Positions 10,771 through 49,302 of a stretch of 64,000 nt of DNA are shown in pieces (position 1 is the first letter of the stretch; each line of letters begins with the position of its first letter). The stretch is from Lepidodermella squamata. Its lineage: Eukaryota; Animalia; Gastrotricha. The translations under genes were made by a program, and so were the position numbers. Below the pieces are notes generated by a model. The model was not told the DNA's origin, did no database searches, and saw only the letters and a list, made by a program, of their open reading frames with translations. The stretch covers positions 2,604,001 through 2,668,000 of the forward strand of contig JBLDXI010000007.1 in assembly GCA_047495785.1 (NCBI GenBank), given 5' to 3'.

Positions 10771-10871
10771 TCGAAAACACTCGTATATTCAAACTTGTTC
10801 TACCAGTTTATTGTTTCGAGACGAGAATAATCAAAAACATAACTAGACAGCGGTCAGGGTCATTTTCCACT

Positions 10872-22122: not shown

Positions 22123-23680
22123 TTGGAAATGTTGCTACCGTCGCTGCTTTTGGTGACAACGCTAAGCTACTCAGTCTTGGCCCAGCCTCTGCCGACGACC
22201 GACGAGGAAACCGACGACTGGAAAAAGTGGAAGCAAACCTACGCCAGCCACCCGCAAGACCGGTTCCACAACGAAGCCGAGGACGACGCGGCCGAGGAGC
22301 GGTTCGAGCGGATGCGACAACGCATCGAGCAATGGGACAAAGAATCGGAAGAGGGCGAGGACGACGCCGACTACGGCTTCAACGAATTCTCCGACTGGAC
22401 GGACGAGGAGTTGCAGCAGCACTACGGCGGCGTGTCCGGCTTTGGCGCTGTTAACATCTCGAAGCAAGTTGTCAGGCGAACGCGCCGGCAAAGCGACGAC
22501 GGCCCGGTTGTAGTGCCCATCGACTACCCGCCATCCCGCCCGTTGCCGGATACCGAGGACATCCCCGGCGCGGTTGTAGACTGGCGTCGGAAGGGCGTGA
22601 TGGGGCCTGTTAAGAGTCAGTACCGGTGCGGTAGTTGCTACTCATTCGCAGCGATTTCCGCCCTGGAGGGAAGGCTAAGAATCAGGGGCTACAGCATCGA
22701 CTCGATTTCTGAGCAGGAAATCGTAGACTGCGCCAAGCTGGCTGGAATCCCGTTTTTCGATCCAGATCACGGGTGCAATCTAGGCAACGCTTATCTCGTC
22801 TATGAGTACTATATAGAAAAAGGGCGGTTTTCTTAAGGAGATCGACTATCACCCCTACGATCCAGCCCAACTCACGACAACCCCGGCGAAACAATGCACC
22901 CCGACTGAGAGTAAACGAGGCGGGCCGAAGCTGAAGGGCTATCAAGTCGCGCAGAGTCGGAATGTTGAAATGATTGAATGGGCGGTTAGTAAGGGCCCGG
23001 TCTATGCGTTGTTCCAGATCGATGATAGGCTGAATGCTTACATTGATAACATCCACGACCCGCCCAACTGCCCGACAAAGGGTAACAAGGGACATTGCGT
23101 TACTATTGTTGGCTACGGCACAAATGTGACAACCGGCGAAGACTAGTAAGAGCTTCGAAAATTACGTTGAATTCCTCTAAAAAAAATTTTTTTTGAAGCT
23201 GGATTGTTCGCAACAGTTGGGGTCCTGGTTGGGGTAAGTCTCAGCTGTCCTATGAATTTGTCTCCATTTTTAGTCTTATGCTCCACAGGCTGGGGCGGTC
23301 ACTTTTTGATTCGGAAGGGCGTGAATCGGTGTGGTATCGAGGATGAGATATGGTGGCCTCTGTTTGAGGATGATCCAGACCCGGTTGACTACAACGGCAA
23401 CGACTATTGGGAGATCGGGGCGGATGGTGTTAGGAGAGACGTGCCTAATCCGAATTTGCCGTGGAAGCGGCCGGTCGAGGACACTCCGCCCCGTTTGCCG
23501 GCTCGAGCACGTCCACCACCGGGGGTGCCGTCGAGGCCTCAGCAATCGGGAGATAGTAACAGTAATAACGACCAAAGTGAGAATAATAACGAGGGGATGA
23601 CTTCAACGAGTCGCAGAACTACTACTACTCGTGCAGTTACCACGGCGATTCCGGATGACAATGCAAATGACTGGCAGTAG
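22123..23680 (+). CDS. Papain-family (cathepsin L-like) cysteine protease with prodomain and Pro/Thr-rich C-terminal extension; apparent 1-nt frameshift near 22820
   Basis: Signal peptide, NEFSDWT, DWRRKG, VKSQ, CGSCYSF, GHCVTIVGYG and WIVRNSWG; the frame is restored by removing one base from the A/G run at 22817-22824. Confidence 0.85.
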
Positions 23681-24695: not shown

Positions 24696-25974
24696 TGTAA
24701 CGGTGACGGGTACTCGCGATCACGGGATCATGACCGACGACCCGACTTGTATTTAGGCAAAAAACAATTCCCGACAAACTAAGAAACTAGGCGGTTTTAT
24801 TAAGGCTAAGGCTAGGCTAATTCATGATCTCCAAAACGGAAGATGATAATTTCATGTAAAATTGGGCTTTTTATAGCCAGTTGGTGAAACAGGTGGAGCG
24901 CGCGCTGCCAAGCAGCACGCGCCGAACATTTGTTGCTAGAAATAGTAAACAGGGCGGTGGCGTCACCGCCACACTCTCCCCCACTCAATCAAGCGAAAGC
25001 TATCAGTATTTTACTACACGCGGTAAAAGAGATGAATCACGGAAATGAATGATCACTGATAGTCTTAATAGAAAGTGTTCGCATTTGGCGGCGGCAGTTG
25101 AAAGATGAAGGCCAGAGATTCCAGTCGGTCGGGACTTGCTTGATCGGACAGTTTGCCACGCGGGGTTTTCACAGGCGCAGATGCTAACCAGGCTACCAGA
25201 GTGCTGACGGGCGAACAGCGGCGGTCGAGTGCACACGTCGACAACGGGTCGGAAAGGCACAAGACGGGCCACACGGACGCAGGTCGCCGGTTGATTCCGT
25301 TGGAACCAGGTAGACGACCGACTCCATCGAACAGACGGCGGACCCAGAAAGCCAGGCGTAGAACAGGCGGTACGGGTTCGAAACGCGAGACGGTAATTCG
25401 AGCCAGACAGACTGACGGTACCGGAAGACAGGCAGGCAACGGAAGACGGCGGAGTCGACGGACCATCAAAGACTGAACCGAGGCGGATGACGGCGCGACC
25501 AGCGGACGAAAGGAAGGACGGTACGGAACGGAGGTGTCGGCGGAAGCGCGGTCAAGACGGACGGGCGGCTGTCGTTTCCAGGCAAGCGTTCGAGCGAGGA
25601 CGGCGTTCACAGGTTGCAGGTTTGCCACAGTCCCTGCTTCCAGGCCAACGGGTTGTAGCAACTGCCACGATCACTACTTCCCGGCCGATGCACCAGTGTA
25701 ACGGTGACGGGTACTCGCGATCACGGGATCATGACCGACGACCCGACTTGTATTTAGGCAAAAAACAATTCCCGACAAACTAAGAAACTAGGCGGTTTTA
25801 TTAAGGCTAAGGCTAGGCTAATTCATGATCTCCAAAACGGAAGATGATAATTTCATGTAAAATTGGGCTTTTTATAGCCAGTTGGTGAAACAGGTGGAGC
25901 GCGCGCTGCCAAGCAGCACGCGCCGAACATTTGTTGCTAGAAATAGTAAACAGGGCGGTGGCGTCACCGCCACA
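24696..25974 (-). mobile_element. Non-autonomous LTR retroelement (TRIM-like) with two identical 278-bp LTRs
   Basis: LTRs 24696-24973 and 25697-25974 with TG...CA ends; 5-bp TSD TGGGA; PBS TGGTGCATCGGCCGGGAA (25695-25678) complementary to the tRNA-Gly(GCC) 3' end; PPT AGTGGGGGAGAG; TATAAAA and AATAAA in the LTR on the minus strand. Confidence 0.95.
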
Positions 25975-26166
25975 TGGGAAGACGTGAAACTAAACGAACT
26001 ATATTATGAGAAAACCTCGAGGCAGGATTCTCGAATTTCAGAAAGCGAAATTGAACAATTACAAAAAATTTCAACTAATTAGGAAAATTTTTATGAGACT
26101 TGAAACCTCAATATCTCACAACTTTCGATTCCTAAAAAAATGTAGTAGGATTCCAGCAAAACTTAC

Positions 26167-27573
26167 ATGACTCAGGGGTACATTGAATTTTCGAGCAAGC
26201 TTCCTCTTAACCAGAGTGCTGGGATTTTTGCAATGCTGTAGCATCATATCGAGCGTAGCATTCTCGCCGTGGGTCAACGGCCGAAACTTAGGCTCTACCC
26301 TCCGCCGTGAAAACCAGCTATCGACCTTCAAAATGTCACAAAAGTCTAATAAAAAAATCTGCTCATGCGACTAACAAATTTACCGTGATAACGTTTAGTC
26401 CAAGCTTTTGAGCGATTCGTTCTCTCTCGAAGGCATCCACGTGTTCAGAAGCCGAGTAAGCCTGTGAAAAGCACAGCTGAAACTGATTGAGAACTTGCTT
26501 CTATTGCTTGCTCACCTCTTCTAAGTAGACGAGATCGGCAGCAGTGAAATTCGGGCGACGCGTTCTCGGCTGAATGCCGGCGCTACGCCTGGTTTTACCG
26601 AACCAATACTTCATCGAATTCAAACTCATCCCCAGCTGAACCGATAGTTCTCTCATACGCTCCCGGGGTGGATACGTGTTCCGAGCAAATTCCTAAGAAA
26701 AATGAAAAAAAAAATCGAAAAAGATCGAAGTCTCAGAAGTTGCGCAAATTGTTTATAATAACTTTTTGTTGGAAATTCAATTGGGTTTTATTAAATTAAA
26801 CCTATCGAGAGAATATTTCTTATTTTATCAGCGATTTAACCGAAGAAATAAAAAAAGTTACCGGGGAAAACCCGAAAAACCCCGATGGTAACTGGTTTGG
26901 TAATTTTCTGTATTTTACCCGTTTAGACCGAATTACTCCGGACTTTTTTAATCCCATGAACAAGTAAATTTCTTTGGTTACTATTCTCGTGATTTTTTTG
27001 CTGGCCATTAGATGTGACTTCGTATCTCATTTCAGAGTTTCTGAACCTTTTTCCGTATATTTGTTTGCTTGCGTTACTTACGGGTAACGCAGTGGAAACA
27101 GATAGCGAAAAACTAAAGCAGCCCAATCTGAATTCATCGGGAAAATATTTCCTGGCTGTAAGCCGTCTCGGAAGGGAATTTTTGGAATCAATTTCCAATT
27201 ACACCAAAAAATTAAATAAAAATTGAACGATTTTTTCGAATCCTGATTGCAATTTTAAATTTTGAATCTATCGGCGAGGCTCCGATCGCCGGAAAATTAC
27301 CTTGTTCAAAATGTTCAGTTGGCTCTCAGACAGGACAGATTTACTTTTAACGGCGGCAGACCGATCACTCTGTCGGCTATCACTGGCTTCTACGTCGCAA
27401 ACTTCAGATTTAACCACCAAATTTTTCATTTCGGAAGTTGCATGGAGTTTTTCTGGCGCTTCTAGTTGAGCTACTCGGGCTTCAATCGCGGTCAATTTAG
27501 AGTCGATCAGCAATTCAAGGCCATTTAGAAATAGCCGATAAGCCTCCTCTATCGGTGATGGGACACTCATCAT
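26167..27573 (-). CDS. Coiled-coil plus triple-homeodomain family member 1 (terminal exon not securely located; candidate near 24195)
   Basis: IDSKLTAIEARVAQLE; LSESQLNILNK|EFARNTYP..MKYWFGKTRR; FTAADLVYLEE|AYS..|VDSWFSRRR; LTHGE..CKNPS..LARKFNVPLSH|. Confidence 0.8.
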
Positions 27574-27700
27574 GATAAAATCCTAGAACAACCAACAAAA
27601 AATTTCCGCCATTTTCGAAATAGAACAAAAGGTTTCCAAGTTAAATTTTAATTTTTAATCAGCCATCAGCAATAAAAAGAAATTATTAGGATTTTTATTA

Positions 27701-28430
27701 TCAGCTTCCATCTTTCATGATTCGCAAAAAATCTGAAAAATAATCAAAATAAATTATAAGAATAAGAAAAATGGCTGAAAACAACGAATTTACCGCGAAA
27801 ATCGATCATTCCAATGCCGTTAAAACCAGTATGGCCGGTCATCTCGCAAATCTCGTCATCGGAGCACTGCTCACCGAGACTTGCCATGAGCTCCCGAAGC
27901 TCGGCCCGGCATATCAGCCCGTCGTTATTTCTGTCAAGCATTCGAAAAACCTCTTCCCAGTCTTCGTCTGCAACGGGTTCTCTTTCCTTTTTCTGCATAG
28001 CTTTGACGAATTCATCGAATTCTATCGCTCCACTGCCGTTCAGGTCGATAACTTTGATTTTCTTCCGCAGCTTTTCCTCGGTCAAATTGTCGGGGGTGAT
28101 TGCGCGGAGGACAATGCGAAGCTCCTCGGCGGTAATCTTACCATCGCCGTCTAAAATACAAATTAAAAAATAAAATCGAAAATTAAATTTAGCTAAGAAA
28201 ATTAAAAGTCAATTCGGAAATTAGAAAAAAATAATAACAATTTCCAAAATGTTAGATTTAAAATTTACCCTTGTCAAAAAATGCGAATGTTTTCCGATAC
28301 TCTGGAATAAAATTTGGAGAAATTAATTGCTAAAACAGAATAAGAACAACGAGAATATCCAACCTTCTAGAGTTTCTTCATCAACTTCGAACCGATAATC
28401 TCTGGAATCGGCCTGTAATAAAGCTCCCAT
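27701..28430 (-). CDS. Calmodulin-like EF-hand protein, copy 1 (4 exons)
   Basis: EF loops DKDGDGKITAEE, DLNGSGAIEFDE and DRNNDGLICRAE; fourth loop degenerate (GFNGIGMIDFRD); N-terminus MGALLQ. Confidence 0.9.
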
Positions 28431-28832
28431 GGTCGAAACGAGCAGCGATGATGAAGCTATTTAGCAGCGTTTTGAAATGCCGGCGAAAAACCGAGGAAAC
28501 AGAGCGTAGTAATAATGGAACAAATCACTTGCATTTTAGCAAGATCCGTGCATTTATCGACTTGAATTTCAACTTGAAGAATTGAATTTCATCTAAAAAA
28601 CACGAAACATTTTTTGTGGGAAAAGAGTTGGGTGTCTAGAATTAGTTGTTCTTTCTTGTGAATCGATCCAACCGATTTTGAACTCGAACAATTACTCGAA
28701 AATCACTCTTATTCACCTGTAAAATTTCAGCTCGTTCTTATTTAACGGTGAAGTGAAATGATTCGATAAATAGAAAATAAAATAAGAGATCAATAGATTT
28801 CATAGACGAAATCCTGGAGTTGGATAACGAAA

Positions 28833-31800
28833 TCAGTGAGACGATTGCCCGGATTTCTTGACTTTTTGCCGATCGTTGATCAACTTCATCGCCTGTTTCG
28901 GGAGTAAACAATAAGTACATAAGTAACCCAATTTTTCATATTCTCAAATTTTCAATTTTTCTAAATCTCAAAGCCAAAATTGTCCTCTATTCATTTTTTT
29001 ACGAATTTTGTTCACGCTTCAAGATTTCACGAAATTTCAAAATTTGGCTTATTTTTTACTTCTTCCTAATGTGTTCCCACTCGCTCTGATTAGAAGGGCA
29101 GAACACCAAATTTCAGGGATGTTTCAAGTCCGAAATTTGAATGGCTCTGTGTGTTGCGCCCGCGGAATTCTTAAAATCGCCGCGGTGGTGCGCTGCGGAA
29201 TAATGCGCGAGTGCGCGCGATTGTTTATCTTTCTGCTTAATAGTGTGCAAAGGTGCGGTGTTAAGACTTTTGACGCGGAAACCATTATTCGCGCCGCGGA
29301 AAAATTAAAAAATAGACGCGGAAAGTAGCGATGAATCCGCGGAATTAAATCCATTAATCAGAATAACTTGGCGGCTGGTTTTTTTTGCAAAAATCATCCA
29401 CTGACCACAGAACCACTTCGTCACGTTAGCTAAACGCGGCTGATAGCAAACCGCTAGCACCTAGCGACTGGTATTAAAGCTCTATAATGGGCTAACTTTT
29501 TCGCGCAAGGTCGGCCAGATATGCCGTAAAAGGGATGTTCGCTATCGGTGCGCATGAACTGGGTGTTCGGCGGCTGCGTACCTATGGGACTCGAAATGAG
29601 TTAATACCGGACTGCGCACGAGGGTGGCTATAGTAACACCGAAACAACCGCCCATTGCTAGCTCCTAGCACCTAATCGGGGTGGTTCGATAACCACTGAG
29701 ACTGAGCCGAGCCATTTTACGACCCGTGTTACTCAGCTCTTTCCAAACGCTGGACGCTATTCCCCCGCCGACCCATTACAACATGTAGCAGTCAATTTCT
29801 TGAAAAACCGCGTTCGAATGAACCCTCTCCGTGCGCAGTTGTCACATTTTTATTGCCCTTATTGCAGGTTTGCAAGGCGCTCGCTCTCAAAAGCGGTGTT
29901 AATCCGCTAATCCCTAATCCGCGTCTCAAGAGTTCCGCCCCTCTTCGCCGCCCTAGCCCTCTGTATTGCGCTGTTGACGTGACTCGCTACCTCAGGACAC
30001 CGGGCTGTGCAAACAGCTTTGGTCAATTTTGCCGATTGTTGTCGATTGCGTTGAAGTTTTTCGAAAGTTTTTCGAAAGTTTTTCGAAAGTTTTCACACGG
30101 CGCGCAACTTGGCGCAACTTGCAAAAACTTGTCAATATCATCCCACTGGCTGAATTCGCTCATTTTTACGGTACCAAGAGCAACGGATATCGCTAGCGGC
30201 GCTTTGGTGGTGAAGATGTTTTACCGCCTTCTTTACCTGCGTATTACCTGACTCAGCGGCAACGGGTCAAGTCGACCCGCCGGTCACCAGTCACCTGTTG
30301 GGTCAGGTCACCGGTCTGGTACTAGTCGTGAGACCATGAGACGTACCAGGACGCCGAGGCTTGATAAAAGGGGCAAAAAACATCAGCTCGTGCCTCAAAT
30401 CAATGCGACGAGCTCATGAATAATCCGTTTCGCTTTACACAGATTTTATTATAGGAGATTCGAAGCCTCGGCGTCCTGGCACGTCTCATGTTCGCGGCCA
30501 GTCAGCCGCTGCCGATTGACCGGTTTTCAACCGAAATATGTCACAAAACTCAGAAATTTTATAAATCGCGTCTTTTGTTTACTATTAGCGTCTTTTGACC
30601 GCGCGCACTCACCGATTTCAGCGGGAAGCGATTAAATAAGCGCGGCGGATTAACATTTTGACCGCGCCTTCACAAATTCGCGGTGCGCGCACAAATTCCG
30701 CGTCATTTTACACATTTCAGCGTCGTGTTTACTTTGGGCGAATTTGAATTATAACCAATTAGTTAACCTTACCTTCAAGAGACGGGCAATCACAATTAAA
30801 AGCCAGGGTTTAAAAAAACTCACAAGACTCCAAGGCACGCCAAGCTTTCGAGCAAGCCTTCTCTGTTGGTCGAGACTTGGCGTTGGGCAAGACTTCAAAA
30901 AAGTGTCAACCACATCTAGGTCGTTCTTCGTCACCTCACGCCATCTACTTTTCTCCCTTTTCTCGACTTTTCTACGCCCCGCGAACCAGTTATCAATCTG
31001 AAACGAAGCTAAAAGAAATCGGGGCATGGAAATGATTTAAGCAAACTAACCGCTACAATGTCCTTTCCAAGTTTAAGAGCAACTTTCACTCTGTCGAAGG
31101 CATCAACGTGAGCTTTCGAAGCATAAACCTGTACGAGGTATTATGTTTAAAAAAAAATCAATGATTTCCACAGGTTGAAACTCACATCTTCCAGGTAAGC
31201 CATATCTTCGGAAGAGAAATCCGCGTTACGCCGTTTATTTGAAAGTCCATATGCGCGGCGAGTTTTGCCGAACCAGTTTTTCACCGCCTTGTTAGTAACG
31301 CCTAAACTGGCGGCCAATTGCCTTTGTCGCTCAATCGTCGGGCAACTGTGGTCGTTGTATTCCTACAAAATAGTACATGACTCTCTTATTTTGATCTTCT
31401 CATCAAGAGTTGGGAATCAAGTTTTATCTAATGGAATCCAAAATAAAACCGAAATTGGAACTGATATTAAGGACAAATTTACAAATTTTCCGAATTTTCC
31501 CAATGTTAAAACCCATTAAAGCCCAATAGCAGCTTTTTTCGACCATCATACTATGTTAAAATCCTGTAGAGTGACTACAACCCCCAAGGTGTTTAAAAGG
31601 CGTATCTCCGCGCGTATTATCGAATAAATCCCGATGGTAACTGGTTTGGCATGTGAAAAATTGATAGCGAGACGCCCTTTCCTAATAGTCCTTACTTTTA
31701 ACAAGACGTTGACCTGGCTGTCCGAAAGTCTAGTCCGAAAGTAAAAAGGCCGGCCGGCAGTTTCGGGAAGGTCAGAATCCGAATTCGCATCATCCGTTTC

Positions 31801-31950
31801 GCTGGCAGTCGACTGTTCAGGAAGTCGATTGGGGCTGGCATTCATTTGTTCCAAGCACTTTAAACGTGCTTCCAATGGAGCAAATTTATCGTCGATAAGT
31901 CGCTGAAGCCGGCCATAGAACAAAGAAATTGCTTGCTCAAAGGAAGCCAT
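28833..31950 (-). CDS. Coiled-coil plus triple-homeodomain family member 2 (5 exons)
   Basis: IDDKFAPLEARLKCLE; RTRLSDSQVNVLLK|EYND..VKNWFGKTRR; IDNWFAGRR; last exon AMKLINDRQK at 28892-28833 after a repeat-filled intron of about 1.9 kb. Confidence 0.8.
30335..30490. repeat. Small fold-back element with inverted ends of about 28 bp
   Basis: CATGAGACGTACCAGGACGCCGAGGCTT ... AAGCCTCGGCGTCCTGGCACGTCTCATG. Confidence 0.75.
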
Positions 31951-34676
31951 GTTTCAAATTGCCCAGGCTTTGAAACAAATCTAATAAAATCTTTAAAAAT
32001 TTCAAATAGGACTGATTTTATGAAAAATTCAAATCAAAGGCGACAGAAAGCATAAAAATCAAGCCCAAGTAAAATTAGGATTTCTGATGATCAAGGCGAA
32101 AAGGAAAGATCAAGAAGCCGATATTCAAAGTTTGTAGGGTTCTTACAGTCTCCGGCTGAATCGGTTGTCTATTTAATAGACAAAATCAAATTTGTTCACG
32201 ACATTTCGATTCCAGCAGATTCGTACTTGAAACAAAGTTGAACAAAGAAAGGCATAGCTTTTGTCAAAAATTATCAAAATTATTCAAATGCAATAGAGAG
32301 CAGCTTCAACGTCAATTCACACTTGGCCCAATCCGAGTCGATTTTGTCGCGGATTTCGAAGTTGGCGGCGTTTCTGAAGAACTGCTCAAGCCAGTAACAC
32401 GCGAAGAAAGGCGCTTGGGCGAACGAGATGATGACGGTGACGCCGATCGTTTCGAGGCAACATTCGCGATTGGTGAATGTTGAGGATGACCGGTTATCAC
32501 TGGTGCGGGCGGTTGAGCTGAGGCCGGTTGAGCGGGGGGCAGAGTTTCCGCCGCCGGAGTTAGCCCTGCGGTGTCTGCGTCGATGATAGCTGGCTGATGC
32601 TGTTTTCGCCGCTTGTCGCGCCTCCGGTTAGAACACGCCTTGGCGACTGATGAGCGGAAAAATTTCTACAAGGAAAATAATTGGCTGAACCTCAACCAAG
32701 TCACAATAATAAAAAGTTCAACAACAAAAATCAGCGACCAGCAATTTCGCAGTCATGGGAAATTTTCTAGGAAACCCTACAAAGTAGGTCACAAAATTTC
32801 ACAGATATCATATTTCAACCACAGACAATTCATAGCCATATACCGTAGTTACCGAAATACAAGCCTGGGCGGCACTACAAAGAACATCAAAGTACCGACA
32901 AAGGGTTGCCGCCTAGGCTTCTATTTCGGTGACTACGGTAGCTCTATTTCTCTATTCTCTATGTTCATAGCAGAAAAAACCGAAAAATATCTTAGGAAGG
33001 ATTTTTTTAATCGAATTATTTTCAAATTTTTTCATCTCAAGTGGGATTTTTAGCATCGAACCCTTCATGACTAGCTCAGCAATGGGCCTACCGAACCCTA
33101 ACCCTAAACCTGAACTCCTATATTGTTGAAAAACAATATGACAGAAATATGTATTGATGAACACTTCGTACTTTTAAATTCCTCCTTAGTGCCGTAATTT
33201 ACGAATTATTAGGCAGGACCGCGAAATAAAGGGCAGACCCTAAATACAAGTCAGGACTTGAACCCTGTTTGAAAAAAATACAGAGCAATCAATTTCTGAA
33301 TGAATTTAGGAAATTTATTTCTCGAGGATGAAAAATTGGCAAAATTAAAAAAAATTGGTGATGCTTTGAAACATGAGTGAAAATTTGATGATAATCTAAG
33401 AATCTTGACAAACCTGCTGCTCAGCCGAGTTGAGCAGCATTTCGGCGCGGTCTTCGTGTGTAAGACGCCACAAGTTCTTCAGTGCATTTAGCGCAAACGC
33501 GTAGTCGCCGCGGACGAAGCTGCGACCCGGATTTTGTCGAAGTATTTCATCGCTTGTGAATCGCACGAGAGCCTTGTAGGTTGTGAATAGGGTTCCAGCC
33601 ACCCACTCGCGATCAAGAGAAGACTGGGCATTTTTCATCGCCTTCAACGTAATAGAAAAATTCACGGGTGCACGCTGAAAATATAGAAAATCAACTTAAT
33701 GAAAATGTATCAATACATTTTAATAGAAAATTGAAGAAATAGCTTAATACCTGTGGCTTGACGTTTTCTCCCGCCACGGGTTCCCGCGGTCGCCTGGCCG
33801 CATCGACAACTAGCTGGCAGGCGATACGGTGTGCGATAAGAGGGAACATCTGCGAGATGTACTCCGGCGTCAACGCCGCCACGGTTGTTCGATCAAGCAT
33901 TTGTTCTGAAATTATTGGAAAAATTAGTCCAGCACTACAGCGAGTCCCATTCGTAACGCAAACAAAGAAAATACTCAGGAAAGAAATCAGGAACTGTAAA
34001 ATTAGAGAGGAAGTCTCATCTCACGGCAAGAAAAATATGCATAAAAACCATAAGAATAGTAATCAATTTAATGGGATTGAATAATTCCGAAGAAATTTGA
34101 TCCCACCAGGTAAAAACCGAAAATTATCAAATCAGTTACCATCGGGGTTTTCACAGTTTTCTCCGGTAAAATTTCAATTTCTTTTCCGTGAAATCAGATT
34201 CCCCGAGTTAGCTTTATTCAACAACAATAATAGTGAATACCTGAATTTTTTTCGAAATTACAAATGGTTGCGAAAATTATGGGACTCGCAGTATTATTTA
34301 TTACCCATATTATTTTACTTATTACCACGGATTTCGTTGGGCCACAGTAGAGATTCTAGAGAATTCTAGAGAAGCGATCCTTAAAGTAACAAAAAATCTG
34401 TATCCAAATTTAATAATAAATATCCGTTGAGCATTTTTGCTCAATTGCTAAACCTGTGCTCAATTTGCTCAACGCGTGCTAAAGCAGTGCACAATTTGCG
34501 CTCAATTCGTGAACAACTAGAGCCTAACCAGAGGATGAATCATCAAAAAGTGCTCAAACTGTGCTCAAAATGTGCTTAACACGTCGTATGACACGCGTTG
34601 AGCACACCAATAATTATTGAAAATATGCCCCGTCATTGATCAGTCAATTTCTGGTTCCGACAATAACCCGATAACG

Positions 34677-34752
34677 GTGGCGCAATCGATTCGATTGCAG
34701 GCGTTGGTGGTCAAAGTCACTGGTTCGATTCCCCGTCACTACTGATTTTTTT
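34677..34752 (+). ncRNA. tRNA-like (Pol III A/B box) unit 1, probably not a functional tRNA
   Basis: TGGCGCAATCG A box, GGTTCGATTCC B box and downstream T-run; the cloverleaf pairs poorly. Confidence 0.45.
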
Positions 34753-34940
34753 TAATGGGCTTTTAGTTTTTTTTACTTTCCTTAAATCTTACTGGCACAT
34801 GGCAATACTGCCGATACCCGAAACTGGCTGTTTGTGAAAAAAACGGCCAATGCCGGCAGTGATGCCTACTGCCAATACGGCAAAATATAAAAAAATCCAC
34901 TTTAAATCGGTTTTTTGTGATTGATTTTCATAGCGAACCA

Positions 34941-35015
34941 GTGGCGCAATCGATTCGATTGCAGGCGTTGGTGGTCAAAGTCACTGGTTCGATTCCCGGC
35001 CCTGACGGATTTTTC
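34941..35015 (+). ncRNA. tRNA-like (Pol III A/B box) unit 2
   Basis: 57-bp core identical to 34677-34733, followed by a T-run. Confidence 0.45.
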
Positions 35016-35841
35016 TGAATTTCTTTCTAATTTTTAAAAATTCGACTGCTCAACGAGTGCTAAACGCAAAAATTGATGATTGCACAATGGGTGCGTAAAC
35101 CCTGCACAAAGTGCTCAACGTTCGCTACTCGATTGCTTAATGAATGCTCAATGAGTGGTAAATGACTGCTCAATGACTGCACAATCGCCTAAAGGTTGCA
35201 CAATGACTGCACAACGAAATGCTTAACATTGCAAAATTATATTGAGCACGGGAAATAATTCTGCTCAACGAATGCTCAACGGATAAATAATTGAAAAATT
35301 CTCGCTATTTTTTTGTTAGAAAGCTATTAAAAAGGGTAACAAAAATTCATCAAAAAAGAGGCTGTGAATCTTCTAGACGTCAGCGAGAAAATTTCGTAAT
35401 GTTTTAATAAAAATATAGCGCAATGCACTGATTTAGAAATTAACAAAGGTCAATAAATTGAGTCATCGTGGCCAGAGGTTCTCAATTCGAAAAAAACCGA
35501 AAATTCAAGCAATAACTGCTCGGGCGCCAAGATAACGCAACTCATTTTTAAAACGCGCGTCACTAGAAATTAAAAAATTGAAATTACCGCCAAATACGTT
35601 GATGAGTGCGGTCCGGTAATCCGGATTGTCAATACCAGCTTCGTCCACAAGTCCCGTGGCAATGGTGGTGTAATCAACCATCTCGCTAATGCTGGCAGTT
35701 TCTAGAGGGGCGGAAGACTCCGAATTCAAATTCACTTCGCTGCCATTTAACTGTTCAGAAATTCTGTTAGTGTAGCCCAATTGCTCCAAGCGACTTAAAC
35801 GGGCTTCCAGTGGAGCAAGTTTATCCTCGATAAATCGTTGA

Positions 35842-36622
35842 CCCAGTCAAAAGCCTGTGGGCCCATGGTGGGCCTATGGTAGGCCTTGTCCGTTGGGCCT
35901 AAGATTGGCCCATGTTAGGCCCGGCTGGGCCCTTGTTGGGCCCGAGTATGTCCGTTTTCCTGGGCCCAAGCTTGGATTTTGGGCCTCGTCTGGGCCTATT
36001 TTGGGCCCATTATTGGCATCCTAATTAAATAACACATCGGGTATTCTTTTATCTTTTTTAATAGATCAAATATTGCATTAAAAGGTTCACCGCATATGCT
36101 TCATTACATATGCAAGGGATGGAATAGAAAACCTGCTACCTTGGTCACATAGGTCTAAACTCACCGCCCGATAAAATAGAGATACAATCATAGAAGAGAG
36201 GGGATACAGGGAATCATGGTGAGAATAAGAGATAAGGGACTATACAGGAGGCCCTTGTGATGTATTCAGTACATCAACGTTTGGCGGATCTTGAAAATTC
36301 AGCTGGAATTTGACGTTTGACCCCCCTCGCGAGAGCTCAGCTTGTATTCCAGCTAACTAATTTGCATATGCACACAATTCATCAGCCTAATTAAGCTTTC
36401 GATTGGGCCTATTTTGGGCCCGATCAAGAATCGGCATTGAGACATCGGCACTCGGGCCTACCATGGGCCTAACAAACTTTGGGCCAATAATGGGCCTAAC
36501 AAATTTTGGGCCTATAACGGGCCTAGCAACTAGCGTGGGCCTACCATGGGCCCATTGACTTCCTGCCTTGGGCCTATAGTGGGCCCCAAGGCCTACCATG
36601 GGCCCAAGGACTTTTGACTGGG
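35842..36622. mobile_element. CCC-terminated MITE with GGGCC-rich subterminal repeats
   Basis: TIR CCCAGTCAAAAG/CTTTTGACTGGG; comparison with the paralogous reading frame implies a 1-bp target duplication. Confidence 0.85.
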
Positions 36623-36828
36623 GAAGCCCATCATAGATAAAAGAAATTGCTTGCTCCAATGTAGCCATACCTCAGATTGCCTAGGCTTTAAAAAATCATA
36701 AATTCTTTATAAACATTAGACTGGGTTCATTTTTGAAAATTAATCTCAAAAGCGAAAGAACCAAGCATATCGTCGACCAAAATAAAATTCAAATTTGTCA
36801 AGGCGAAAATGGACGATCGAGAAGCCGA

Positions 36829-38157
36829 CTATTCAGCGTTTTTAGGTTTCATACGGTCTCTGATGATCTTCGCAAGCTGAAAAACAGAAATTATTTCATA
36901 ACAATTTCGCGCCAAAAAACCGGGCAGTTACATAGCTGAGCGGTATGCCCAATTTCAAGGAGAGTTTCTTCATCAGCAAGTCGCTAGGTTCTTTGCAGTG
37001 GTGCAGGAACTCATCGATCAAGCCGTTTTCTTCGCTGGTCAACGGCCGGTACGAAGGCTCTACTTTCCGCCGGCTGAACCAGTTGTCTATCTATAATAGA
37101 AGAAATTCGAAATTGTCGTCAAATTTCGACTCGAAAATGAAATGATTCTACCTGAGCTACGCTTCTCTCGAGTTTTCGCGCAATTTTTTGCCTGTCCCAA
37201 GCATCGACATGTTCCTTGGATGCATAAATCTGGGAAATTAAGTAAACAATTATGAAATTGTTTCATGATTTTATGGCATCTCATGAAAACTCACGTTTTC
37301 GAGGTAAATGAGATCGGTTGCGCTGAGGGGAGTCGCACTCCATCTCGGGGCGCCTCCACTGGCGAGGCGATGGTTCGAAAACCAGGCTTTCACCGTATTG
37401 AGAGATACGCCGAATTCGTCAGCCAGCCCTTTAAGACGCGTCCTCGACGGAAAATTGTTCTCTTCAAATTCCTGAGAAAATGAAGAAAAATCTATTAAGT
37501 TCGGACAAAGTTGGGACAGAAATACTTCAAAGACTTCAAAACCTTCTAAATGTTGGGTTTCCGCCTCAAGCGCTATAGACTATACAAAAAGTTTTTTTTT
37601 CGAGTTAAATGTCTTCCGGAAAATCTCAATTTTTGTAAAGATGCCCCCAAAAGATTTGCAGTAATTTGCAGTAGAAACTCGGTAAGACCGTCGATACCTG
37701 TAATCACCCTAACAGTTACCATATTGAGATTTTAAAATGTTCGGCGATGTAACAAAGGAGATGCTCCCGCTATGATAAATTGAATAAAAAAAAAATTTTA
37801 CAACTCGGAACAATCAGGCAACTGCTGTGATTCATTTAACCGCGAAATTAAAGCGAAACTTCCCACCTTTCTCAACACCTCAATCTGGCCGGGTGTCAGC
37901 GTGGCTAGTCCTGGCGGTCCACCAGCCGACAATACGCTCTGCTGGCTAACGCTGACCGTGTCGCTGTTAGCATCGACAGCCTCAGCTTTAATCGCCCTAT
38001 CAGATTCCGGTTTAAGTTCAGACCGAATGCCGATACCCATTGCAAGTTCGAGCTGCTCCAATCGAGCTTTCAAAGGCGCCAGTTTCGCATCGATATTCGC
38101 TTCTAAATGCCCGAGTAACAGCGAGCAAGCTTGCGAAAGCAATGCTTCGCTATCCAT
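36829..38157 (-). CDS. Coiled-coil plus triple-homeodomain family member 3 (5 exons)
   Basis: IDAKLAPLKARLEQLE; LTPGQIEVLRK|EFEENNFP..VKAWFSNHR; IDNWFSRRK; CKEPS..|LAKIIRDRMK. Confidence 0.85.
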
Positions 38158-38289
38158 CGACACTCTGGTTCCAACTATAGGTAGAAATTGTCTAAATTGA
38201 TTCAGAACTAGGCATTTATTGTCCAGATGAATGTTTCAATTATTGACGATTGAAAATAAGAGATACTGGCGATTCTGAATAATGAAATT

Positions 38290-38341
38290 GGCTACTCATA
38301 AAAAGCCGATAAGGTTCCTCACTTGGCGGTGGGACATTCAT
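38290..38341 (-). pseudogene. 5' remnant of a family-member-1-type gene
   Basis: Reads MNVPPPSEEPYRLF against MMSVPSPIEEAYRLF at 27573, in the same position after the calmodulin-like gene. Confidence 0.65.
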
Positions 38342-38465
38342 GGTAAAATTCTAGTCAGAAAATTTTAGCAATTTTCAACACATTTTCAAACAAATATTAT
38401 CCAACTTTCAAATGTTTTTATTCATCAGCTATCAGCAAAAAACAGAATTATTAGGATTTTTATTA

Positions 38466-39113
38466 TCAGCTTCCATCCTTCATTATTCGCAAAAACTCTG
38501 AAAAATGTAAAAAAAATAGGAAAAAATTCGAGAAATCGAATGAATTTACCTCGAAAATCGATCATTCCAACGACGTTAAAACCAGCATGGCTGGTCATCT
38601 CGCAAATCTCGTCATCGGAGCACTGCTCACCGAGACTTGCCATGAGCTCCCGAAGCTCGGCCCGGCATATCAGCCCGTCGTTATTCCTGTCAAGCATTCG
38701 AAACACCTCTTCCCAGTCTTCATCCGCCACGGGTTCTTTTTCCTTCTTCTGCATAGCTTTGACGAATTCATCGAACTCAATCGCTCCACTGCCGTTCAGG
38801 TCGATAACTTTGATTTTCTTCCGCAGCTTTTCTTCGGTCAAATTGTCGGGGGTGATTGCGCGGAGGACCATGCGAAGCTCCTCGGCAGTTATTTTACCAT
38901 CTCCGTCTAGTTTAAAAATTTAAATTTAAATTCAAAATTTAAATTAAATTTACCTTGGTCGAAAAACTCGAATGTTTTCCGATACTCTGGAAGAAAAATG
39001 AAGAAAAATTCAATTGCAACGATAGAACAATTGCAAGAAAATAGCCAACCTTCCAGCGTTTCTTCGTCAACTTCGAAACGATCTCTAGAATCGGCCTGCA
39101 ATAAAGCTCCCAT
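38466..39113 (-). CDS. Calmodulin-like EF-hand protein, copy 2
   Basis: Near-identical protein and exon structure to 27701-28430. Confidence 0.9.
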
Positions 39114-39515
39114 GGTCGAAACCAGTAGCGATGATGAATCTTTTTATCTTGCCGATGAAAAACCGAGGAAACAGAGCGTAGTAATAATGGAACGAATGAC
39201 TCGCATTTTAGCAAGATCCGTGCATTTATCGACTCAAATTTCGGATTTTAAGAATCAAATTTCATCTAAAAAAACAGGCAAAGAGTGAAGAAAAAGAGCA
39301 GAGTTGGGTGTCGAATTAGTTCCTCTCTACTTCTGAATCGATCCAACCGAATTTAAGCTGAACCGTTTAACAGACAACTCAAATTTATAGAAATTTAGAG
39401 AAGAAAAGACGATCGTGAACTTTGACGAAGAAAAATCATGGAGTTTCATCAGTGGGACAGTTGTTTTCTGCGGATTATCTGCGATTTCGGCGTTTCCTTT
39501 TTTAAATCGATACTG

Positions 39516-39740
39516 ATGCCCTCGCTGATCCTAGGATTTTTTATTTTAGCTACCTGACGCCCTAAGCTACGTAGAAAAGATATCGATGTTGGATTCCAAG
39601 ACGGCTGATATCGGGAAAATCACTGATCAGTAAAATCGATACTTGGAATCGATATCGGCTCTATAGGATGAAGTATAATTCGTAAACTGACCGCTCATAG
39701 TGCAAATTACGCGCGATATGAAGGTCTATCGCTTAGGCAT
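39516..39740. mobile_element. 225-bp interspersed repeat with ATGCC...GGCAT ends; second copy at 55633-55857
   Basis: Two colinear copies of equal length and high similarity. Confidence 0.75.
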
Positions 39741-39861
39741 AATACATACCTAAGACAAAGATTGGTCAGCCTTGAAAACAATTTTTAAAATTTTTTCTAA
39801 ATTTAGAAATAATTCATATCGAAAGCGAAAAGACATAAAATCGTGCATCCAATGAAAAATC

Positions 39862-41526
39862 TCAAAATATTGATCGAAAAGCCGATTTATCGACGTTTAT
39901 AGCTTTCTTACGATCGCTGATGATCTTCGCAATCTGAAAATGAGAAAAATAAGAAGATGGGCCACGTCTAAAACTAGGCATAATTACAAGTCTGAGAGGC
40001 ACGCTCAATTTTCGGGCGAGTTTCTTCATCAGCAGCTGGCTAGGTTCTTTGCAGCGCTGCAGTAAATCATCGACCAAGCCGATTTCTTCGCGAGTCAACG
40101 GCCGAAAAACAGGCTCAATTCTCCTGCGACTGAACCAGTTGTCTATCTGAACGTAAATTTGTACACGAGATTTCGATTCGGGATAACTCTGTTTACCTGA
40201 CGTACGCGTCTGCCGAGTTTTCGAGCAATTTGTTCCCTGTCAAAAGCATCGACGTGATCCCTGGATGCATACATCTGGGGAAAAATACCAGCAAATAGCC
40301 GAAATCATTACTGCAAGCGTTAAGCTTACGTCTTCGAGGTAGACTAGGTCGGTTGCGCTGAAGGGAGTTATCCTCCATCGCGGGGTGACCCCACTGGCGC
40401 GGCGGCTGCTCGAAAACCAGGATTTCAACGAATTAAGGGATACGCCAAATTCATTAGCCAGCTCTTTACGGCGCTCCATCGAAGGAAAGTTGCTCACTTC
40501 AAATTCCTGGGAAAATAATGAAAAATCAATAGTAATACAGTGCGTGGCAAAAAGAAATCACGGAAAATTGTTCAGAAACTCTAAATTGAGAAGCCAAGTC
40601 ACATGGCCATAAAAAAATGTAGAAAAATTAAAAAAATCACGATAATAGTAATCAAGTACATGTATCTTGTTATTAAGGTTGAAAAAGTCTGGAGAAATTT
40701 GGTCAAACTGGGTGAACTACCGGGCCATGAAAGAACCAGTTGCCATTGAGGTTTTCCGGGTTTTCCCTGTAATTCTTTCATTTCTTCGGTTAAATCGCAG
40801 CTAAAAGATGCACCAGAAAAAAATGCACCCTAATCAATTCCGGCCGGTTTGATTGAATTTCAATAGCGTCGTCATTTTTTATTTTCAACTCGAAAAAATT
40901 GACACATAGGTCAATGAGACTATGGCGGACATGGTGATATTTTTTTTAGATCGATAATCGTTTTTAGAAACAGATGTGAAATTTCAAGTTGAAAATAAAT
41001 CGAAATTTCAATCTCAGGTTGACTATTCTCAAATTGCTAGTATGGGATGATAATTAAAATTAGGAGAGGCTTGGATTTCAAGTTATATTTTTAAAAAATC
41101 TTTGGCGATAATGATTAGGAAGCGGGATGTGTTCCCGATATAAATCAATTGAATTGAAAAGTTTTGAATCTCAAAACTTAAGACTTGATTCATTTGATTC
41201 ATTTAATGGTGATTTTCATCGAAAAATCCTACCTTTTTCAATATATCTATCTGGCTGGCAGTCAGCTTAGCTGGGCCTGCACGCCCTCCAGCCGATGATA
41301 CGCTCTGCTGGCTAACGCTGACCGTGCCGCTGTTAGCATCGACAGGCGCCTCAGTTTTAATCGCCAACTCTGGCTCTGGCGTAGATTCGGATGGAACGCT
41401 GCTACTCATTGGAAGCTCGAGCTGCTCTAATCGAGCTTTCAAAGGCGCCAATTTCGCGTCGAACATCGCTTCTAAATGTCCGAGTAACAGCGAGCAAGCT
41501 TGCGAAAGCAATGCCTCGCTACCCAT
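39862..41526 (-). CDS. Coiled-coil plus triple-homeodomain family member 4 (5 exons)
   Basis: FDAKLAPLKARLEQLE; LTASQIDILKK|EFEVSNFP..LKSWFSSSRR; IDNWFSRRR; IAKIISDRKK. Confidence 0.85.
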
Positions 41527-42981
41527 CGATACTCTGGTTTCAACTTACGTTGAAAATAGCCTATAAATCGATTCAGAAATAAAAAAATATTCCGGCGAGA
41601 TAGATGATTCATATTTCGAAGCGATGGTGAAAAATGCAGCGAAGTCAAGGCGAATTGCTTTTAAAACTTCTGAACACTCCAGTTCCATTTATGTATGTTT
41701 TTAGATTGGGGACATGAGCAGTAATATCGCCTCCCCCAAGATAGTAATTGAATATACTAGAAGCCGCAGAGGCGCGCGAGCCACTCCTCGATTTCCTTAT
41801 TCTGCAATGGGAAAAGTCTTAGGTTTCGATTGCCTATGATAACCATGCCTTATTGTGAGTTAATTTCGAACGGACGTGCATTTTAGAATGACTTTATCAC
41901 GCTAAAGAAATGATGGAAGAATGATGTTTCTTCGTTTCGCGTTTGGACGAGCGAAGAAGTGCGCGGATGAAGTGCGCGCAATTTAGGTCAAATGAGTGTG
42001 CGGATTTTATTATCGCGAAAAGTACCTATCAACTTTCTCAAAATTATCCGCTGAAGTACACAAGAAAATCATGAGATATTCCGGAGACAATTTTTCTGGC
42101 TTTTTTTCATTGTCTTCGTCTACTCTCGGCAAAGTTTATTATTCCAGCGTGAAAAAAGAAGAAAAAATGAATAAAAAACTAAATTTGATTAAAAAATAAT
42201 AATTTTATTTATAATTCCGTCTTCGATCAAACAGCTCGTATTTGAATGCTTCCAGCTTAACATTTTTGCCTTATCGGCTTCCAAGCATTTCAAGCATTTC
42301 ACAAAATATCGCTTTTGGCGTTTATATGCCGAGAAATTATAACAGGAATAATTGTTTTCACAATATTCAGGATATAAATTTATATGCGCTCGTGATGATT
42401 CATTTATTTACAACCGCGAGCCGCAGTATGTATTCGGTGCAAAATGCTGCGATATTGACCGACTTTTTTTGTAACGCGACGCTATTCATTGATTAGTGCA
42501 CTATTTTTATTGCGAGAGGCAAAAAACAGCTCTCACACACCGGGCTGATGACGTTCCTGCAGCAAATACAGCTGTCCATATCGCCTCTTATTGTAGTACT
42601 AACGAGTACATGTGTAAATGAATCTATATTCCAATTATATCGATCAAGCGTATGATTCGATCCATCTACCTAGCGCAAAATTCACCATAAATTTCCGCAT
42701 TCGTTTTTTCTCCCAATTTGAGGGTGACATCGATTTTTTATTAATTTTTGAGAACTTTGGAAAAATTAAGTAAATTATTTTTTGGATGATAAATTGTTGC
42801 TCAAAATCGTTTATGACAGATTTTATGGTTGAAAAGCAAAGTTGCCCTTGACTAAAAAATTCGCATAAATTATTCCGCCAAAAATGCGGCGCGGTCACTG
42901 ATGCGGAGTGGTACATTTTTAGGCATATTTATTCCTTTGATTTTTGCAGCGACATTTTTTCTTCTTTTTTACAATAGAATA

Positions 42982-44597
42982 ATGACTGATTTAACAGAAA
43001 TTGAGGATGGTGGGAACTTCAGGTTGCCGAATGTCGAGCCTGCTCAATATTTATCGCCGCAAGAAATCAAAGATTTAATGCTGCTATCTAAAGATTTTGT
43101 AACTATGCACGGCGGCTTGCTGGAGAAGCCGGGTAAAATTATTCAACACGTGCCTTTCCTACTATTTCCATCGCCTTTCCCGCGCAATTTATTCGACATG
43201 GTTGTGCAAATTCAAATCGATTTCCACGTGAGTAGAAAAATCGCACATTAAAAAATGAAAAAAATCAAAATTTGAAATATGAAAATTTGTGGCCATTTTT
43301 TATTAAAAATTGAAAAGTCGAAAATTTAAGGTGGTCTTTTAAATTAATTTTTTTAAATTTTTTTCAGAATTTGATTCATCGGCTTTCCCTTGATCGAGAC
43401 TTCATGTTCGAAGCTCTCAGACCAATTATCGAGACAGATCGGCTGACCAAACAGCTCTGGGACCTTTACGAAAGGGTTCACCTCAAAGAAACGCAAAACC
43501 CACGAATCTACATGATTTTATGCCGAAACGACTACATGTTAGATGCTTCAGTCGAAGGGGAGATGAGCATCAAGCAGGTCGAATTCAACATGATAGCAGC
43601 TGGCTTGGGTCCAATGCAAACTTCAGTCACGAGCTGGCACCAATTCCTAATGGAAAGACTTCTGAAAGAAGGACCTAAACCAGCCTTGGAAAAACCTGGC
43701 CAAGGAATCGCTGAAACCATCGTTGAAGCTGTCAAAGCTTACGAGCAAATTTACGAAACTAGCGAAACCCACGTCCTATTCGTCGTCGATTCGCCTACGA
43801 AAGATATTTTCGACCAACGTTGGGTTGAAGTTGATATTTTAAAATCTCACCCTACCGCTAAAATTATTCGAAGAACTTTCAAAGACTTGCGGTTTTTGAT
43901 TGATCGCGATGAAATTGCGAAATCTGGCCGGTTGATTGTTGAAAATCTCGAAATTTCTGTCGTCTATTATCGACATGGCTACGACGAAGGGCATTACGAC
44001 TTTGAAGCTGGCGATTGGGAGTTAGTTCGACAGCCGATCGAACTCAGCCGAGCTGTAAAATCACCCTGCGTTGCTCATCAATTAGCGAATACGAAAATAA
44101 TGCAACTAGCCGTGATGAAAACCGGTGTTTTAGAGCGGTTTGGTTTGAATCCGGAGCAAGCTGCAAGAATGCGGTCAACTTTCACCGAAATGCTTGGTAT
44201 TGAAGATGAAAAAATCTTTGAATCAGGAATTTCTCGGCCTAACGATTACGTTTTAAAGCCGATGAAAGAAGGTGGCGGTCATAATTATTTCGGTGCTGAA
44301 ATGGTAGTGAAACTTGAAGAATTACGGCGAAATCCTGATAATAGAGAAACGTTTATTCTGATGAAACTCATGAAACCGCCGCATTATTTAAATATCAGTG
44401 TAACACCCGGTGATTCGACGGCTAAATTCGAGAATTTTTCGACTGAACTCGGCATTTTTGGCGGATATCTCGTGGTTGATGGTCACGTGAGGTGCAACAA
44501 TTATCTCGGTTATCTTATGCGATCTAAAACTGCGCAGGCGAAGGAGAGCGGAATAATGTCTGGATCTGGCAAATTGGACTCGGCATTTTTTGTCTGA
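42982..44597 (+). CDS. gss: Eukaryotic glutathione synthetase-like protein, copy A (2 exons)
   Basis: PFLLFPSPFP, RNDYM, IFDQR, YYRHGY, VLKPMKEGGGHN, ELGIFG and GYLMRSK. Confidence 0.9.
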
Positions 44598-48885: not shown

Positions 48886-49302
48886 TTCGAATCGTCCAGA
48901 AGAATCGGATCACAGTTGAGATGAGGAATGAATAGTCAGCTGAATTGCGAATCGCAATTATTATTCATGAGGTGGTGCCTATGCTATACGCCACGAAGTG
49001 ACTGGTCTGCATAACGTTGTAGCCATAGTAGAAATTGATTATTCATCTCGGTTGTCAAGAGGCACCTATTGTTTTCAAAAAAAACAAACTGCTTATATTT
49101 TCCAGCTCGTGTATCGCTTGAATCGATTGGTAGAACTTGCCGGAAAATGATCAAAACAAATATCCTAATCAGGGCCAATGCTCTCGCCGACTTAGTCTAT
49201 TAATATCATGCCCAGCTGATAGAGAAAAATTGGAAAATTACCGACACAGGAATCAAAAATTATAATTCTTTATTTCTGAACCTTAAAGAGTTCTGACATA
49301 TT

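Follow-up and report, generated by a model that had tools for sequence, protein, structure and literature searches.

In a 64,000-nucleotide stretch of the genome of the gastrotrich Lepidodermella squamata (hereafter the window), we found a cluster of four paralogous minus-strand genes (designated A to D), each encoding a protein of 236-259 aa with an N-terminal helix followed by three homeodomains (HDs). Judging from their substitution patterns, the paralogues are under purifying selection. We consider it about evenly balanced that the whole of our preferred explanation holds, namely that the cluster was built by repeated local duplication and would encode an oligomeric, multivalent chromatin-binding or looping factor, and not a classical TAAT-reading developmental regulator.

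Gene structure and selection

The four genes share a five-exon structure, with the start codons and strand that the first-pass annotation had assigned to them (Table 1). All predicted introns in genes A to D are GT-AG and in phase 0, and exons 2 and 3 measure 177 and 78 nt respectively in every gene. The last exon of gene C sits beyond a 1.9-kb intron, where its acceptor was the clear best among 127 candidates (score 26 vs. 8); an alternative last exon at 30772-30749 was set aside for the one at 28892 on the basis of homology and flank similarity, and may represent a splice variant. For gene D, the weakly supported candidate last exon, which follows a 35-nt intron, is tied with another candidate, and HD3 of this gene probably ends early within helix 3. 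The 15 pieces listed for run X1 (presumed RNA) included no spliced joint; this run covered some exons and repeats at low depth. Stop-to-ATG gaps in the cluster are about 130-750 nt and an AG lies shortly 5' of most ATGs; these short gaps and acceptor-like sites make co-transcription of the cluster as an operon plausible.

Table 1. Positions of genes, exons and other features in the window (HD, homeodomain).
Feature	Extent	Strand	Exons	Basis or remark
Gene A, coil + 3 HD, 259 aa, ATG 41526	39862..41526	-	41526-41233, 40506-40330, 40274-40197, 40146-39988, 39933-39862	gene model, predicted splicing
Amphipathic helix at the N-terminus of gene A (residues 4-37), RhxxhE at end	41416..41517	-		motif definition PMC5940361
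Calmodulin-like gene 2, ~161 aa, EF1-3 canonical, EF4 degenerate	38466..39113	-	39113-39050, 38986-38954, 38906-38550, 38497-38466	
First-exon remnant, gene-D-like, lying upstream of gene B	38246..38341	-		tblastn, alignment
Gene B, coil + 3 HD, 250 aa, ATG 38157	36829..38157	-	38157-37867, 37471-37295, 37229-37152, 37090-36932, 36876-36829	gene model
Chimeric fifth gene, same coil, then putative SAM-like and further helical region	32312..36668	-	36668-36623 + 35839-35588, 33905-33751, 33674-33414, 32665-32312	
781-bp non-autonomous inverted-repeat DNA transposon, inside coil exon of fifth gene	35842..36622	.		CCCAG ends
Relic of gene-B-like 3' end, upstream of gene C	32000..32212	-		self-BLAST
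Gene C, coil + 3 HD, 247 aa, ATG 31950	28833..31950	-	31950-31696, 31362-31186, 31128-31051, 30997-30824, 28892-28833	gene model
Calmodulin-like gene 1, ~162 aa	27701..28430	-	28430-28364, 28301-28269, 28150-27794, 27732-27701	
Gene D, coil + 3 HD, 236 aa, ATG 27573	26108..27573	-	27573-27301, 26692-26516, 26461-26384, 26325-26167, uncertain last 26131-26108	gene model, last exon uncertain

A dN/dS near 1 would have marked the family as neutral relics; for the closest pair, A/B, it was 0.48, with a bootstrap interval (0.32-0.72) below 1. The ratio was 0.20 for A/D and 0.24 for B/D, with synonymous sites saturated in distant pairs. Within A/B the coil (0.13) diverged more slowly than the HDs, and HD3 (0.82, interval 0.32-3.2) was near neutral evolution.

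Homeodomains and their relatives

In each of the four genes, exon 2 by itself exceeded the Pfam Homeodomain cut-off. Scored with a profile built from 163 independent HDs, the spliced HD1 and HD2 gave E-values of 4e-12 to 7e-15 and 5e-6 to 5e-10 respectively; HD3 of genes A, C, and D reached only 6-13 bits and that of gene B gave no match. In hhalign, HD3 aligned to an HD profile without gaps over positions 3-50 at a probability of 95% (30 column shuffles gave 5.6% at most), and in a structural model of HD3 from an intron-retaining frame, in which intron-coded residues took the place of helix 3, helices 1-2 reached pLDDT >90 and resembled HD structures (Z up to 6.5). By the profile comparisons, HD1 and HD2 are clear homeodomains and HD3 is a degenerate one.

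The three back-to-back HDs were described correctly from the outset: Trp48-Phe49 is kept in all eight HD1/HD2 (Arg53 in seven of them), and Asn51, the main base-reading residue of HDs, is retained in only one of the 12 HDs, HD1 of gene B. HD3 has neither the Trp48-Phe49/Arg53 signature nor any discrepancy with the helix-3 peptides first quoted for it. Residues 50-51 read SS, SN, GK, and GK among the paralogues in HD1, and SR, SR, AG, and SR in HD2. All HDs have a net positive charge and three of the proteins a pI of about 9.6, the gene B protein being neutral overall (pI 7.0). The HDs are spaced at a fixed 59 and 53 residues and carry introns at 18/19 and 44/45. In the HD tree, HD2 formed a clade with a support of 93 and HD3 grouped with gene F at 71, deep nodes being weak. 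The window contains further multi-HD genes without Asn51, and both Asn51 loss and tandem HDs are general to the divergent homeobox genes of this genome.

In a search of 1.84 billion representatives with the HD1 profile, all matches were multi-HD proteins unrelated to the family, sharing at best 26-36% identity over the full length, and none had the coil. The coil itself found nothing at E<=1 among 5.8 billion proteins (candidates 0.55-1.75 times the query length), stayed under 0.9 in the Atlas, and, like exon 1, had no Pfam or PDB match. Such blank searches are weak evidence because the organism is essentially absent from protein databases; a glutathione synthetase from the window had a best database match of 37%, and two single-exon proteins of the window had no exact counterpart there. 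The architecture had been called unrecognised, which holds insofar as the N-terminal motif has no detectable relative. Its novelty was overstated, as both lineage-restricted multi-HD genes and designs joining an oligomerisation domain to HDs are already known. In C. elegans, duxl-1 (with three HDs), ceh-83, ceh-99, and ceh-100 are divergent, lineage-restricted, and without orthologues, and their tightly packed HDs and clustering in a duplication-rich region resemble the cluster here; however, they belong to another phylum, orthology is not established, and the excerpted account describes no N-terminal coiled coil in them (PMC4448998). HOMEZ/ZHX proteins likewise combine several atypical HDs and leucine-zipper-type helices (PMC2211742, PMC4901127), but they are vertebrate proteins, HOMEZ being defined by HD phylogeny with ZHX, whereas the genes here have a single short N-terminal coil, no zinc finger, and no specific sequence affinity to them; the 60 best PDB matches to the HD1 profile include neither ZHX nor HOMEZ. 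An oligomerisation module with one or two HDs is found in the CMP class (Drosophila Dve, SATB), plant HD-ZIP, and HNF1 (PMC4901127). None of these, however, has three back-to-back Asn51-less HDs; COMPASS of the CMP class is a different domain, and the HD-ZIP zipper is directly C-terminal to one HD, whereas the coil here is N-terminal. DUX4, whose family belongs to the PRD class, shares the tandem HDs and the tandem gene array and ranked among the best PDB entries matched by the HD1 profile. The 46/47 intron often present in PRD-class genes (PMC2211742) is nevertheless absent here, introns being at the two positions given above instead, and Asn51 is also missing. As to a possible ANTP-class placement, the 44/45 intron is as in NANOG and engrailed was the best PDB match, the tree containing no named reference HDs.

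How these HDs may act divides the two best-surviving alternatives. One, which we regard as possible at perhaps half the weight of our preferred explanation, is that the proteins are transcription factors whose sequence-specific code has been rewritten, each paralogue having a distinct long motif, possibly in repeats. Residues 50-51 vary while Trp48, Phe49, and Arg53 stay, the HD spacing is fixed, the genes have a birth-and-death arrangement, and the HDs of A/B outpace the coil in divergence; yet dN/dS above 1 was not seen, and no conserved substitute for the base-reading Asn51 is present. With their differences at residues 50, 51, and 54, and with two or three HDs reading, the paralogues would compare with a ZAD- or KRAB-zinc-finger array. 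The other alternative, that the HD folds are protein-interaction surfaces of non-DNA-binding cofactors or decoys, is unlikely: it has a precedent in HOPX, a folded HD without key DNA contacts that works through partners (PMC9179269), and would fit the loss of Asn51 from 11 HDs and of Trp48/Phe49 from HD3, but HD1/HD2 retain Arg53 and basic helix-3 ends, and three of the four proteins are strongly basic.

The N-terminal helix and the fifth gene

The N-terminal motif proved common to the four HD genes and a fifth gene between them, and in all five helices it ends with RhxxhE in register (Arg at g, hydrophobic residues at a and d, and Glu at e). Seven residues are invariant across the five helices, three of which are the R, the second h, and the E of RhxxhE; its chance expectation is 0.0035 for every 35 residues of the retrieved proteins. 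RhxxhE defines parallel trimeric coiled coils (PMC5940361) and ends all five helices, which favours a trimer over a dimer. The motif by itself does not settle the oligomer state, and because it was inherited once, its five copies do not count as independent observations. The helix has only about 2.5 in-register heptads and stands about 40 residues N-terminal of HD1; four of its five copies contain a proline. By its residue pattern, it is a conserved helix of coiled-coil character that also occurs in a non-homeobox gene; hetero-oligomerisation through it is plausible, and the motif points to trimers.

The fifth gene (355 aa without its transposon) shares 72-82% nucleotide identity with gene C over the 5' flank and coil exon, a similarity by which its helix is derived from a copied 5' end of gene C. 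It had been described as a SAM gene with the shared motif; the motif stands, but the SAM domain was called by eye and confirmed by no tool, its intron-split halves having no Pfam, PDB, or Atlas match. A BEN domain in exons 3-4 was also considered but found no support: exon 3 alone gave no match and its model was of low confidence (pTM 0.42). In the assembly, the transposon, flanked by a 2-bp target duplication, interrupts the gene within the helix motif. An intact, empty-site form is present on DNA contigs (run X2), with a joint 35839-36623 at about half depth.

A more far-reaching reading, which we consider doubtful, is that the helix is a mobile trimerisation module through which co-transcribed paralogues and the fifth protein would form combinatorial heterotrimers, a gastrotrich counterpart of ZAD/KRAB zinc-finger systems in chromatin or repeat control. 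Diversifying readers with recoded HDs would there be joined to a shared effector, e.g., a SAM polymer.

Linked genes and a proposed mode of action

Both calmodulin-like genes are intact, with a dN/dS of 0.08; of the four EF loops they encode, three are canonical and the fourth is degenerate. They resemble calmodulins in the four-EF-hand layout (E ~1e-26), but with a longer N-terminus and an EF4 without its first Asp they are divergent and not true calmodulins. Both are copies of a single duplicated 1.2-kb block (27519-28689 vs. 38290-39363, 78% over 1186 nt by self-BLAST), and the linkage therefore arose once. The first-pass annotation had proposed that the oligomers are calcium-regulated by the linked protein. 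The conservation and canonical loops of these possibly co-transcribed genes, and the basic amphipathic segment formed by HD3 helix 3, would suit such a role, which is nonetheless very unlikely: the linkage goes back to a single segmental duplication and no match to the IQ motif turned up, which leaves calcium control unsupported. Moreover, divergent homeobox genes elsewhere in the window lie equally close to unrelated partners (BRCT-like, histone H3 variant, and PHD-like), and a literature search gave no precedent. The calmodulin-like genes look like passengers of one duplication. Of the lineage-specific factor set first proposed, what endures is a real family under purifying selection without detectable relatives; the calcium part does not. 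Least likely of all, the members could be decaying, largely dispensable duplicates with little current function, as the two gene relics, the probable truncation of gene D, the transposon in the fifth gene, and the lack of RNA support might suggest, but four open frames and conserved splice phases persist among distant paralogues despite saturated synonymous sites, and dN/dS intervals lie below 1.

Under our preferred explanation of a multivalent chromatin-binding factor, an operon-like tandem cluster, in a lineage whose divergent homeobox genes are numerous and evolve fast, would produce proteins whose N-terminal helices associate in parallel as a short coiled coil. This would most likely be a trimer (homotrimeric, or mixed among co-expressed paralogues) that presents as many as nine homeodomain folds. 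In HD1 and HD2, the Trp48/Phe49 cores, Arg53, and basic surfaces would hold DNA; because the standard Asn51-adenine contact is missing, we propose that affinity comes from avidity and that any specificity is non-canonical. HD3 may be an accessory or degenerating module, the fifth protein, with its captured helix, could enter the oligomers, and the calmodulin-like genes would be conserved neighbours, possibly co-transcribed, and not regulatory subunits. An N-terminal multimerisation domain joined to one or more DNA-binding domains is also found in Drosophila Insensitive (BEN-solo), where it gives multivalent binding (PMC6317261), and in insect ZAD-zinc-finger proteins (PMC12947871). The analogy may extend to rapid lineage-specific evolution and multivalent chromatin binding, although their DNA-binding folds are unrelated to HDs and the function of the cluster is a predicted one.

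As one instance of a genome-wide pattern, the cluster is of limited surprise on its own. L. squamata retains only four recognised Hox genes (PMC11660948), with which its expanded set of divergent homeobox genes forms a notable contrast. The chimeric fifth gene represents an oligomerisation exon recently shuffled onto another protein. If the proteins bind DNA, they would offer a natural test of HD reading without Asn51, and of trimer avidity as its replacement.

Gene models and homeodomains of the cluster

The four minus-strand genes that combine an N-terminal coil with three homeodomains (genes A to D; homeodomains HD1 to HD3) were modelled from the genomic sequence with predicted splicing. 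All of their introns are phase-0 GT-AG introns, exons 2 and 3 measure 177 and 78 nt in every gene, and the proteins share 38–68% pairwise identity, bearing out the common exon structure proposed in the first-pass annotation. The last exon of gene C, after a 1.9-kb intron, was the clear best among 127 acceptors scored, while the uncertain last exon of gene D probably ends within helix 3 of HD3.

In each of the four genes, exon 2 by itself passes the Pfam Homeodomain threshold. Against a reference profile of 163 homeodomains from unrelated database proteins, HD1 and HD2 gave E-values of 4e-12 to 7e-15 and 5e-6 to 5e-10 respectively, and HD3 gave just 6–13 bits, with no match for that of gene B. 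Despite this weak score, HD3 is homeodomain-derived, because a profile-profile alignment runs without gaps through positions 3–50 at 95% probability (column-shuffled controls, at most 5.6%) and the domain has the same 44/45 intron as HD2. Of the three back-to-back homeodomains originally read, two are thus clear and the third is degenerate. The HD3 fold prediction used an intron-retaining frame.

The window has a GC content of 42.3%, and the Lepidodermella squamata assembly (122 Mb, 157 contigs) has 43% GC and 3% heterozygosity (PMC11660948).

Features of the window, with coordinates and strand
Feature	Position	Strand	Remarks
Gene A	ATG 41526	-	open frame, 259 aa, five exons
Gene B	ATG 38157	-	open frame, 250 aa, five exons
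Gene C	ATG 31950	-	open frame, 247 aa, five exons
Gene D	ATG 27573	-	open frame, 236 aa, five exons
Fifth gene	32312-36668	-	same coil, no homeobox
Calmodulin-like genes 1, 2	27701-28430, 38466-39113	-	
Gene E	15259-18103	-	proline-rich N-terminus, three homeodomains, coil and Asn51 both absent; model open over 342 aa; retroelement-like debris in last intron
Gene F	56962-58119	+	three homeodomains, HD2-HD3 spacing as in A-D
Gene G	19192-20630	-	single Asn51-less homeodomain, 18/19 and 44/45 introns
Two divergent single-homeodomain genes	about 54400-55005, 62200-62960	+, -	approximate boundaries; adjoin histone H3 variant (55129-56787) and PHD-finger-like gene (60794-61399)
BRCT-like single-exon gene	18236-19111		BRCT by eye; gene G 80 nt upstream
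Two tandem glutathione synthetase genes	42901-46880	+	divergent from gene A, 1.37 kb between
Tandem globin-like genes flanked by two single-exon SOCS-box-like genes; Cys-loop channel gene cluster	7710-13089 and 46960-53075		by eye
GABA-B-like receptor ORF	5126-7534		by eye
Cathepsin-like gene	22123-23680		by eye
TRIM-like small non-coding LTR retroelement	24696-25974		just downstream of gene D; two identical 278-nt LTRs, TG...CA ends, 5-bp target duplication, purine tract; primer site presumably resembling tRNA-Gly 3' end
High-copy interspersed repeats, small inverted-repeat elements	39474-39744 and 55591-55861; 26823-27093, 33937-34195, 40547-40806; 30332-30493		introns, spacers
Two tRNA-like short repeats	34677-34771, 34941-35035		fifth gene intron 1

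The N-terminal helix and the fifth gene

Some 34 residues long, the N-terminal motif forms a predicted amphipathic helix. Its C-terminal end carries about 2.5 heptads in register, and four of the five copies contain a proline. All five copies end in Arg-h-x-x-h-Glu (Arg at g, Glu at e), a motif known to stabilise parallel coiled-coil trimers (PMC5940361). Three of the seven invariant helix residues fall within this motif, which would occur by chance about 0.0035 times per 35 residues. Since it was inherited once, the five copies count as a single observation kept by selection. The helix had no relatives in a length-limited search of 5.8 billion proteins (where this lineage is nearly absent), in PDB or Atlas, or among the best 150 homeodomain matches.

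The fifth gene opens with the same helix (ATG 36668), into which an element of 781 bp has inserted, bounded by inverted ends of the CCCAG type and a 2-bp duplication of the target. DNA contigs from sequencing run X2 contain a joint at about half depth, its short side just 28 letters long, that excises precisely this insertion (783 nt). The empty site restores a frame that is open over 355 aa and interrupted by three GT-AG introns, and an intact allele or paralogue therefore exists. In its 5' flank and coil exon, the fifth gene shares 72–73% identity with gene C, and a relic of the 3' end of the preceding gene is part of this similarity; the coils are 82% identical (other pairs, about 50%). The simplest reading is a chimera that acquired the 5' end of gene C. 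The shared motif of this gene was thus upheld; its putative SAM domain, divided by an intron, fits by eye, with no match to either half in Pfam, PDB or Atlas. Searches gave no support to a BEN-like reading of the region that follows. Another X2 joint (depth 49, intervening letters unknown) skips 3997 nt (35837-39835), which may reflect a haplotype or paralogous locus that lacks both gene B and calmodulin-like gene 2. The tRNA-like repeats in intron 1 are probably SINE-like, as ARAGORN called no tRNA there.

Possible mode of action

In the most likely mechanism, which we give about an even chance, the helices would assemble into short trimeric coiled coils presenting up to nine homeodomain folds. 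Arg53 and basic surfaces on HD1 and HD2 would then hold chromatin by avidity, and specificity would be weak or non-canonical. Arg53 is present in seven of eight HD1/HD2 domains. As first noted, Asn51 is mostly missing (kept in one of 12 domains), and Trp48-Phe49, found in all eight HD1/HD2, is gone from every HD3. Paralogue-specific readers with a recoded helix are possible at clearly lower odds, and HOPX-like cofactors that do not bind DNA are unlikely.

Both calmodulin-like genes are intact and nearest to calmodulin. Three of their EF loops are canonical and the fourth is degenerate. The interleaving of these genes on the same strand was confirmed. All seven genes lie head to tail, about 130–750 nt apart, with acceptor-like AG sites a little upstream of most start codons, so arranged that co-transcription is plausible. 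A self-comparison placed both calmodulin-like genes within one duplicated block (1186 nt, 78% identity) that takes in the start of a gene-D-like exon, and the interleaving therefore represents one linkage, copied once. Such linkage does not imply physical regulation, and the IQ motif is absent from all five proteins; the calcium modulation first suggested thus fared poorly, and calcium-regulated complexes are quite improbable. None of the runs on record as RNA contains the window's stretch; run X1, merely presumed to be RNA, had low-depth pieces on repeats and on exons of calmodulin-like gene 2 and gene B, with no spliced joints among those shown.

Nei-Gojobori dN/dS was 0.48 for A/B (bootstrap 0.32–0.72), and 0.20 for A/D and 0.24 for B/D, rough values given synonymous sites at or near saturation in distant pairs. 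Within A/B, the helix is most constrained (0.13) and HD3 least (0.82, wide interval), and HD3 may be under relaxing constraint; the calmodulin-like pair gave 0.08. Because of these values, set against the ratio near 1 named at first pass as the mark of neutral relics, the cluster genes are not such relics, and dispensable duplicates are the least probable explanation.

Other homeobox genes and known systems

The window holds at least five further divergent homeobox genes. Divergent homeobox genes outside the cluster lie 80–174 nt from unrelated genes. The three that were modelled, E, F and G, have the 44/45 intron in common (the 18/19 intron occurs in E and G), lack the coil, and keep Asn51 in none of seven domains. 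HD3 of gene F retains Trp-Phe and clusters with the family's HD3 (support 71), which suggests that the ancestral HD3 was standard. Asn51 loss and tandem homeodomains thus appear to be a trait of divergent homeobox genes beyond the cluster, and A-D stand out by their coil and by a rewritten HD3.

By sequence, proteins A-D belong to the homeodomain superfamily and to none of the named classes tested, in line with the first-pass annotation, which did not recognise the architecture among standard classes. Genes that are likewise divergent, clustered and multi-homeodomain, without orthologues, are known from C. elegans, one having three homeodomains (PMC4448998). Links between oligomerisation modules and homeodomains are known for COMPASS, HD-ZIP and HOMEZ (PMC4901127, PMC2211742), and any likeness in action between A-D and Insensitive or ZAD-zinc-finger proteins is an analogy only. 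The combination of a coil with three homeodomains, and the shuffling of that coil onto another gene, appear to be undescribed.
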